Shown here: in pieces, positions 50,483 through 59,761 of the stretch
How the letters are laid out: the number at the start of each line of letters is the position of its first letter
How positions within the stretch are numbered: position 1 is the first letter of the stretch
From: Piromyces finnis finn
Taxonomy: Eukaryota; Fungi; Neocallimastigomycota
Assembly: GCA_002104945.1 (NCBI GenBank)
Contig: MCFH01000070.1
Span: forward strand, 124,001-188,000
DNA: 64,000 bases
Direction: 5' to 3'
The notes under the pieces: generated by a model
Seen by the model: only the letters and a program-made list of their open reading frames with translations
Database searches by the model: none
What the model was told of the DNA's origin: nothing
Made by a program: the position numbers and the translations under genes

Positions 50483-51912
50483 GGCATCAAATATTTTAAA
50501 CTTTATTATTAATTTAATTAAAATTATAATACATGTAATAAAAAATTAAAAATAAATAAAAATAAAAAAAATATGTTTAAATAAACACAAATGAATAAAA
50601 ATTGGGTATAATGTATTCTAGTAATTTTAATTAAAGTAAGAAAGCCACTATCATACTAAAGTATAATAATTGTATTTGACTTCCAATGGGACACCGAGCC
50701 AAAGATCAAAATTTTGTCATGGAACAAAATTATGATCTCCATTGGTTGCGCTGGCCCTCCTGGCCTGTCTTACTGTTTCTTCAGCATTGACGCTCTTGGA
50801 TGTTGCTTCAAACCTTTTGAACATTGACCATTGCTGGCCAATAGCAAAAGGCATGATTTTGGTTAGAAGTTCCGCGGTTACCGTCAAGAATGGTGTTCCT
50901 TCATTAGTACCAGATTGAATCTGACGCTTACAAAGTTCTTTCCATTCCCTTGAATTGTAATTAATATTGTTAAAACTTCTTCCCCCAAGAAGGAATTTAA
51001 ATATTTTACTGCACACACTAGAATAATCATACACATTAATATTCACCGGATTATTAGAACTATTACTATCATTAACTAAATTACTATCTAAATTAGAATT
51101 ATTATCTTCACTATTGCTATCATTATTAATATTATTATTTCTATTACTACTATTGTTATTATTACTATTTCTATTATTACTATTACTACTATTGTTATTA
51201 TTACTATTGTTATTATTACTATTGTTATTATTATTATTGTTACTATTACTATTACTGTTATTGCTATCTCTACTGACATTATCAATTTCATTATTATTGA
51301 TAGGACTATTGGAATTACGTTGACTGAAAAAATTTAATAGCTGGACTATGGAATCATAATGTTTAATACGGATATCTCTAAATGTTGGACAATCTAATAA
51401 CCAATGTTTAATACTTTGATCTCCACACTTGCAACATGGACAGTAGTTAGGACAAACTGGATCAACAAATTTAGCAGCTTTGGCAACTCTAGCATCCAAC
51501 TTGTATCCGCTTCTTGCTTTCAATAGCCAGTAGAAGCCATAGGCAAACTCTGGGTATTCATAACATAATTTAATAAAATCTTTAGTTTCAATAAATTTAT
51601 TATCATCATAATATTGCGCTTTGATTGAATTCCCTTTGAGATCTTTCCAATAAAAGTTTTTAACTGCTTTAACATCCCCATGTTTCTTTAGTTTTTTATC
51701 AAGTGTCCTACTTGATTTGCACCACGTGTATTTTCTAAATTTAGGAATGTAATTGACAAGGTGTGAGATAATACAATTTGAGTTTTTCCATTTGTTAAAA
51801 CATCTAACCTGAGCTAACGCACATTTGGCTGACAATGGAGGAATATTCAAATCTTTTGAGATAGAGTATAAAGATATAAACGATACGGCTTTATGAACTC
51901 CGGCAATCCATC
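50447..51912 (-). mobile_element. 5'-truncated copy 2 of the same LINE family
   Basis: T33 run at 50447-50479 (poly(A) on the minus strand). The 3' UTR and the last ~400 codons are nearly identical to copy 1 from ~6208 onward. No clear TSD. Confidence 0.95.
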
Positions 51913-52394
51913 ACAGACAAAACGGCATGTTAAAACATGCTTTTTTTTAACCAGATTTATTGATGGAGAGTTTAGAATTCGCTCTTGAAACGCCCATATA
52001 TAAACTTTAATTTTTGAATAGGTATAAAATCAATGATAAAAAACTTTTAAATTATAACATTTCTTAACAAAAAACCTTTTATCCATCTTTGATATATACA
52101 TCCAATAATATAACACTTCCAATTTTTTTTAAAAACTTATACGTTATAAAAATTAAAAACACAAAATTATAATAATTTTTTGATTTATATTTATTTCTTT
52201 AATTTTTTTATTTTTTATTTGCTTTGCATTTCTTTTTTTAATATTTGTTATTTTTGTTATTTGTTACATTCTTATTTTTTATTTGTATCTATTCTTTTGT
52301 TGTTTTGTTTTTATTTTTCTTCTTATGTAATGATTTTAGTAATACTTATTTATTACTACTTCAAATTTAGCACACTTTGTAGATGTTAAATTTT

Positions 52395-52499
52395 TTAACA
52401 AATAGTACAGCATGATAAACTAGAGGAACCTATAACTGGTTCAGAGTTTGTTGGTTTTGATTCATTATTTAAAGCACTTGAAGCACTTTGATCCTGGCT
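52395..52499 (-). other. Putative cryptic in-frame C-terminal extension of TPI ending in a CaaX motif (SQDQSASSALNNESKPTNSEPVIGSSSLSCCTIC*)
   Basis: 34 open codons directly after the TPI TAA. 36 of 102 nt are G/C, with only 5 of 34 third positions G/C, which is a coding-like pattern. Confidence 0.55.

Positions 52500-53538
<1,039 letters not shown>

Positions 53539-55095: not shown

Positions 55096-59761
<4,666 letters not shown>

Follow-up and report, generated by a model that had tools for sequence, protein, structure and literature searches.

Behind the stop codon of the TPI gene of Piromyces finnis, the reading frame continues into a short tail with a CCaaX end, and this tail is kept as an open frame with its CCaaX end intact across diverged lineages of anaerobic gut fungi. 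The gene is located on the minus strand of the window, a term used here for the whole stretch of DNA that was analysed (64,000 nucleotides). The best reading of the tail, judged from sequence and held by us to be fairly probable, is that low-level readthrough of the stop codon gives rise to a minor, lipidated and membrane-tethered TPI; translation of the tail, readthrough as the route to it, its lipidation and the target membrane are the parts of this reading that we infer.

The TPI gene is composed of three exons, and its spliced open reading frame (747 nt) encodes a protein of 248 amino acids with the C-terminus ...IINARL. Exon 1 (53517..53538, minus strand) starts with the ATG at 53538 and encodes MARKFFV-G, exon 2 (53252..53341, minus strand) is flanked by GT..AG introns, and the coding part of exon 3 (52503..53134, minus strand) carries the Pfam match and runs to the end of the protein. 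The two introns are 175 nt (GC 10%) and 117 nt (GC 15%) long, and both are of the GT..AG type. Comparison of exon 3 with Pfam family PF00121 aligned positions 35-244 of 245 (E = 8.5e-87), and a protein search with the same exon gave 96% identity to an anaerobic-fungal TPI cluster (P0001), which is a 90%-identity cluster of 59 members; the next matches were found at 73% identity. The members listed for P0001 include Neocallimastix californiae, N. lanati, N. sp. 'constans' and Piromyces sp. E2, and the last of these is the closest among the relatives listed, with 6 residues differing between its TPI and that of the window. The TPI coding sequence has a GC content of 45% (GC3 42%). Downstream of the gene, a 377-aa open frame (50717-51850 of the window, minus strand) is rich in Cys and His over one stretch and has a long low-complexity run of Asn and Ser; a Pfam search of this frame gave no family. 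A reverse-transcriptase ORF (L013:1431-1847) was observed downstream of the TPI B copy of N. sp. 'constans'.

The first stop codon of the gene (TAA, 52500..52502, minus strand; next base A) was read directly from the sequence. Behind it the TPI frame stays open for 34 sense codons (52499-52398) ending in ...SSLSCCTIC and followed by a second TAA, just as the first-pass annotation had stated. The tail starts with a hydrophilic linker of 28 codons rich in Ser, Asn, Glu and Pro (52416..52499, minus strand), followed by a Ser-Cys pair (52410..52415, minus strand), the Cys of which is a candidate palmitoylation site, and by the CaaX box C-T-I-C (52398..52409, minus strand), a candidate farnesylation signal; the second stop codon (TAA, 52395..52397, minus strand) lies immediately 3' of the box. 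The base composition reported earlier for the tail was reproduced: G and C make up 36 of 102 nt (35%), as compared with 16.5% over the 200 nt further downstream and 10-15% in the introns, and they are distributed over codon positions 1, 2 and 3 as 11, 20 and 5 of 34. A third-position G/C count as low as that of the tail was obtained in 0.17% of shuffles. Because 8.4% of shuffles of the tail's 102 nt were likewise free of in-frame stops, the open frame in one genome alone is not significant, and it is conservation in other genera that raises it above chance. A within-window null for post-stop open length was unusable, as just three long GC-rich open stretches are present there. The tail was assigned to no family in a Pfam search and, in the window, contains no in-frame ATG. 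Among the gene models of these fungi that were listed, the complete annotated TPIs all stop at ...INARL and lack the tail. One catalogued TPI (P0130, 247 aa) has a divergent C-terminus, ...LKNPNLQVMI, which equals an L022-type tail in the +1 frame (L022:776-810) and most likely results from an assembly or sequencing frameshift near the stop.

For the comparison with other anaerobic gut fungi, the DNA around TPI proteins was taken from genomes and from spliced transcript assemblies, and the frame past the stop was read. The intact lineages are the window, Piromyces sp. E2, N. californiae copy A and three lineages from transcript assemblies (L022, L023 and L029). The tail of Piromyces sp. E2 (L001:3031-3132) has 34 sense codons and ends in SCCTIC, as does that of the window; 33 sense codons and SCCVIC were read in N. 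californiae copy A (L002:3099-3197), 31 and SCCTIC in L022 (L022:779-871), 36 and SCCNIC in L023 (L023:775-882), and 33 and SCCTIC in L029 (L029:788-886). All six tails therefore fall within 31-36 sense codons (linker 25-30) and end in S-C-C-(T/V/N)-I-C, and in each of them the second stop stands straight after the final Cys (five TAA, one TAG). The first stop of these lineages is TAA in five and TGA in one, with A as the next base throughout; in the full comparison, each of nine TPI sequences has a stop at this place (TAA in eight, TGA in one, always with A behind it). Synonymous divergence in exon 3 among the six intact lineages ranges from 0.085 to 0.28, and Neocallimastix is placed on the longest internal branch of the nucleotide tree. 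Alignment of the TPI 3' flanks across genera, which had been proposed together with the extension, supported it: frame, length class and terminal CCaaX are kept in six diverged lineages. The TPI 3' flanks of the chytrid outgroups Gonapodya (L042) and Polychytrium (L043) carry no CaaX or PTS1 tail after the stop; as far as sampled, the tail is specific to anaerobic gut fungi. The annotated 255-aa TPI model of Gonapodya prolifera ends in ...PLHDILSSA (L042:2479-2508), unlike other TPI C-termini, and its last exon may have been mis-modelled. A metagenome scan with a DNA pattern of the tail, in a collection evidently without fungal metatranscriptomes, returned one TPI contig of the N. californiae type and six chance matches without an upstream ORF.

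Constraint on the tail was assessed from indels, from substitutions and from base composition. Its length differences require at least three indel events and are all multiples of three; two of these indels fall within the first five codons past the stop, so that the frame is kept from the stop onward. In the linker, at least 66 substitutions were counted by parsimony, none of which creates a stop, versus an expectation of 4.1 (P = 0.016) that rests on about 6.3% of single-base changes in the linker creating a stop. The other two sense frames of the tail contain 1-5 stops per lineage. Six columns vary within the terminal 21 nt (S-C-C-a1-I-C-stop), and the motif tolerates change at each of them (P = 0.0016): they are the third positions of Ser and of Cys, the whole a1 codon and the last base of the stop; a recount of the same columns with the last 9 nt removed gave P = 0.0076. 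The S-C upstream of the CaaX box is invariant in all six intact lineages, with only synonymous third-position changes. The order GC2 > GC1 > GC3 was found in each of the six tails, and GC3 (10-21%) is at the level of the non-coding background. As a test for dN/dS below 1, pN/pS was computed for the whole ungapped tail; it was 0.61, which is not significantly below a column-shuffle null of 0.79 +/- 0.19 (P = 0.14). Since the value is not significantly below the null and the antisense frame that shares the tail's third positions gave an equal one (0.62), substitution ratios alone are no proof of coding. The linker is thus constrained in frame, length class and composition but weakly in sequence, as for a disordered spacer, and the strong constraint is that on the last six codons of the tail.

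Loss of the tail was observed in two groups of TPI copies. Neocallimastix possesses two TPI paralogues that are 2-3 residues apart (CDS pS = 0.19): copy A (L002-L011, L036) keeps the CCaaX tail, and copy B (L012, L034, L044-L053, L056) keeps just a recognisable remnant of the tail DNA. In the remnants of copy B and of L054/L055 the CC pair is gone and GC amounts to 14-20% (14% in copy B). Two to four in-frame stops are present in the remnants of L034 and L054/L055; in L012, a Neocallimastix B copy, the remnant frame is open for 44 codons. L054 (827-920) and L055 have four in-frame stops in the linker and still carry C-N-I-C plus stop at the end, and in L054 the upstream Cys, the candidate palmitoylation site, is replaced by Tyr. 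The TPI protein of L054/L055 equals that of Piromyces sp. E2 over exon 3, with pS at about 0.2. The tail decays where constraint is lost; as copies A and B have diverged about as much as genera (pS 0.19), unconstrained tails decay within that time. Because these two TPI copies are tail-less, the tail is dispensable, at least where another copy exists. Both Neocallimastix copies, A and B, were observed to be abundant in metatranscriptomes.

The end of the tail was examined as a substrate for lipidation. A Cys is located four residues from the C-terminus in all six tails, and the stop follows directly after C-x-I-C; a1 is T, V or N, and a2 = I and X = C are invariant. In the S-C-C common to all six lineages the second Cys adjoins that of the CaaX box, and the linker ahead of it is flexible, non-basic and rich in Ser, Glu, Asn and Pro. 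In CCaaX ends of the Ras2 type, the Cys beside the CaaX Cys is palmitoylated. A complete screen of CXXX motifs in yeast showed nearly any residue to be accepted at a1, with D/E/K/R restrictive at a2 and K/P/R restrictive at X; Ile at a2 was favourable in a Ras-based assay, and CKQC, in which X = Cys, was 100% prenylated (PMC10320760). The CaaX box of the TPI tail passes these rules for yeast FTase, a2 and X both being permissive; the general rules were applied, the exact motifs CTIC, CVIC and CNIC not being found in the papers on the yeast CXXX screen or their supplements. The Ras-like, farnesylatable CaaX with X = C recognised in the first-pass annotation was upheld in so far as its conserved and variable positions fit the specificity of farnesyltransferase (PMC10320760), the lipidation itself being a prediction.

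The tail is part of the TPI mRNA. Spliced transcript contigs (747-nt CDS, intron-free) include the first stop and the entire tail and reach 150-400 nt beyond, and one of them terminates in a poly(A) run 358 nt past the first stop. A poly(A) site upstream of the tail, which had been named as an outcome that would speak against the extension, was not found, as the transcript contigs run past the second stop. The first stop is intact in all of more than 40 transcript contigs, which are consensus assemblies in which a minor edited or spliced fraction would not show. The tail as the terminal exon of another gene was rejected: the upstream neighbours of TPI differ (an INTS14-like gene at 55096-57243 in the window, Sec15 in the N. 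californiae contigs) and are on the opposite strand, so that, there being no in-frame ATG in the tail either, it is not an exon of another gene. Alternative splicing across the stop was rejected as well after all in-frame GT..AG pairs had been considered in the six lineages, none of which combines a conserved acceptor with an intact enzyme. The donors of the pairs that span the stop are all inside the conserved TPI coding sequence, and any such splice would cost the enzyme its last 16 residues or more, among them the GGAS stretch that binds phosphate. The 33-nt GTTAAC...CAG interval pointed out earlier (52526-52494) is present as described, but as a splice alternative it is not conserved and has no AG in Piromyces sp. 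E2 or N. californiae. These results, together with a frame that is kept from its first codon, favour readthrough as the source of an extended protein.

Features known to raise readthrough were sought around the first stop. A readthrough-stimulating RNA structure within 120 nt past it was rejected (consensus fold of -5 kcal/mol, two weakly covarying pairs), and the window contains no tRNA genes from which a suppressor tRNA could derive. The earlier assessment of TAA-A as a weak signal was borne out: UAA-A, or UGA-A in one lineage, is not a known leaky context. Leakiness in Ustilago maydis is conferred by UGA-CU, and readthrough drops there when UGA is replaced by UAA (PMC4207609). Since the context is not recognised as leaky and no conserved structure follows the stop, readthrough at the TPI stop is likely to occur at a low level. 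Few cytosolic proteins are as abundant as TPI, so that a small readthrough fraction could be enough. The codons of the tail are AT-ending and unoptimised, against a GC3 of 42% in the coding sequence, which would fit rare translation, and retention of the stop in all nine sequences, with TAA to TGA as the sole change, suggests that a constitutive extension is selected against.

On the favoured reading, the TPI mRNA of Neocallimastigomycota would encode two proteins. Nearly all ribosomes would end at the first stop and release cytosolic TPI; a few would continue past it, one residue being supplied there by a near-cognate tRNA, and would append about 30 residues of flexible, hydrophilic linker ending in S-C-C-a-I-C. 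The CaaX Cys would then be farnesylated, the last three residues cut off and the new end methylated, after which palmitoylation of the adjacent Cys would leave a minor pool of active TPI dimer tethered to a membrane. In the TIM barrel, helix 8 has its C-terminus on the side of the fold that points away from the catalytic loops and the dimer interface. This placement, together with the finding that U. maydis Tpi1 is expressed with C-terminal extensions and as GFP fusions (PMC4207609), makes an active tethered TPI dimer plausible. A more far-reaching proposal, which we regard as doubtful although worth stating, is that a stretch of glycolysis is tethered by lipid anchors, with a TPI-GAPDH module at the plasma, flagellar or hydrogenosomal membrane to which TPI would be recruited, through a farnesyl plus palmitoyl anchor of the Ras2 type, via readthrough of a nominally strong UAA-A stop. 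On that proposal, TPI would be the first core enzyme of metabolism in a cellular organism to have a prenylation signal exposed by readthrough of its stop codon.

The 3' UTR also contains elements that point to functions at the level of nucleic acid, and these were weighed as a different cause of the conservation. An inverted repeat, TGTTAAA-AAA-TTTAACA (52384..52400, minus strand), lies over the last Cys codon and the second stop; its GTTAA/TTAAC stem is predicted in six of eight sequences, both tail-less Neocallimastix B copies included, and may be a nucleic-acid-level cause of part of the conservation of the last 9 nt (ATT-TGT-TAA), which extends to synonymous sites. About 40 nt past the second stop, a perfect 7-bp hairpin, AGTAATA-AATAAG-TATTACT (52338..52357, minus strand), is present as a single exact copy in the window and in seven of the eight TPI 3' UTRs compared, tail-less paralogues included; it is possibly a TPI-specific element for mRNA stability, localisation or 3'-end formation. 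A TTTAACAT block in the UTR is conserved and non-coding and is likewise kept even in tail-less paralogues. The tail itself could accordingly be a conserved RNA element of the UTR, acting in stability, localisation or 3'-end formation, with its open frame and CaaX-like end a coincidence; the block and the two small hairpins, a whole-tail pN/pS that is not significantly under the null, and the 8% chance that a single sequence of such composition is open all agree with this. Such an element, however, does not predict indels in triplets only, the absence of stops from one frame over at least 66 substitutions, the GC periodicity, variation confined to synonymous and a1 positions, or a TAA to TAG change that preserves the second stop. 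In L023, moreover, the nucleotides upstream of the motif are rewritten and S-C-C-x-I-C plus stop is retained, and the tail-less copies retain the UTR hairpins yet lose the Cys-Cys codons. We therefore consider an RNA element in place of a coding tail to be unlikely, and slightly more so than the production of a real extended TPI by a route other than readthrough.

Such routes are minor alternative splicing and a change of the stop at the RNA level by A-to-I editing, which acts on stop codons of certain ascomycetes and of hepatitis delta virus. They gain some credit from a stop context that is not a known leaky one and from assemblers that give the dominant isoform, so that a rare junction or edit would be missed in contigs; fungi are also known to add targeting signals to glycolytic enzymes by splicing (PMC4207609). 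Weighing against splicing are the cost of every GT..AG pair, the want of a conserved acceptor and of an AG for the 33-nt candidate in two of the species, and a frame that is open, with triplet indels, from the first post-stop codon, which an internal acceptor would not need. Editing of UAA to a sense codon would take two edits, and the stop is intact in the more than 40 transcript contigs; taken together, these routes have a small share of the probability. A somewhat smaller one still falls to a tail that is translated after readthrough but serves as a degradation or quality-control tag or as a Cys-rich end for redox chemistry or metal binding. Readthrough products are commonly made unstable by the peptides that 3' UTRs encode, and three Cys in the last five residues could do other chemistry, but a degron or metal site needs neither a Cys exactly four residues from the end nor an immediate stop, and the farnesyltransferase-like pattern (a1 variable, a2 = I, X = C) would be left unexplained. 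Resemblance of the tail to a Ras hypervariable region plus CCaaX, and the two lineages proving that it can decay, would also suit a relic in decay, left by an ancestral longer TPI or by the capture of a Ras-like C-terminal exon and separated from the enzyme when a nonsense mutation arose recently. This origin is very improbable: the first stop is common to all lineages and hence older than their divergence, the intact lineages took at least 66 substitutions and several indels with frame and motif unbroken, and in unconstrained copies of similar age as many as four in-frame stops arose and GC fell by half.

Freitag et al. (2012) reportedly described cryptic isoforms of glycolytic enzymes that fungi produce by readthrough or alternative splicing and send to peroxisomes. 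The TPI tail resembles such isoforms, U. maydis Tpi1 among them: it belongs to a fungal TPI, an abundant cytosolic enzyme, is conserved in frame past the stop and has a sorting signal as its last residues, which would give a minor second isoform from one mRNA. It differs in its end (-IC of a CCaaX motif rather than an SKL-like PTS1), in its stop (UAA-A or UGA-A, not UGA-CU(A)) and in its length (31-36 residues, longer than in those isoforms), and it is known from sequence alone. It is readthrough of the stop codon that provides U. maydis Tpi1 with its targeting signal (Stiebler et al. 2014, PMC4207609). With Ras2 of Saccharomyces cerevisiae (...CCIIS) the tail shares a flexible hydrophilic linker and Cys-Cys-a1-Ile-X at the extreme C-terminus; unlike in Ras2, the motif is borne by a TIM-barrel metabolic enzyme instead of a small GTPase, stands behind a stop codon and has X = Cys. 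Yeast Ras1 ends in CIIC. In the large antigen of hepatitis delta virus, the stop is removed by ADAR editing of UAG, and the resulting extension of 19-20 residues ends in a farnesylated CXXX; the short and long forms of the antigen have different roles. Suppression of the TPI stop would similarly unmask a short extension with a C-terminal prenylation signal, although the TPI tail is cellular and the route proposed for it is ribosomal readthrough rather than editing.

In the literature found, a readthrough extension with a prenylation signal occurs once, as a prediction, in Drosophila Syx17: its extension was predicted to carry a farnesyltransferase signal, as one gene among hundreds (Dunn et al. 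2013, PMC3840789). The TPI tail would likewise be a product of readthrough in a cellular gene, with a prenylation signal predicted at its end; Syx17, in contrast to TPI, is a SNARE and already a membrane protein, and no phylum-wide conserved CCaaX was reported for it (PMC3840789). A survey of Arabidopsis gave no conserved isoprenylation site in any readthrough extension (PMC9293766). Our literature search found no paper on the TPI tail, on prenylated TPI or on readthrough in Neocallimastigomycota. The best-supported reading of the tail is that it follows the principle of the fungal readthrough isoforms, with a lipid-anchor signal in place of PTS1.

Readthrough is already known to send glycolytic enzymes to peroxisomes, and a conserved lipid-anchor tail would, if this reading is true, add membrane tethering to what it can achieve. 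Such a tail would also imply that, for a very abundant parent protein, selection is able to preserve a functional extension behind a 'strong' stop, and it would provide a handle on the spatial organisation of glycolysis in organisms that live entirely on fermentation.
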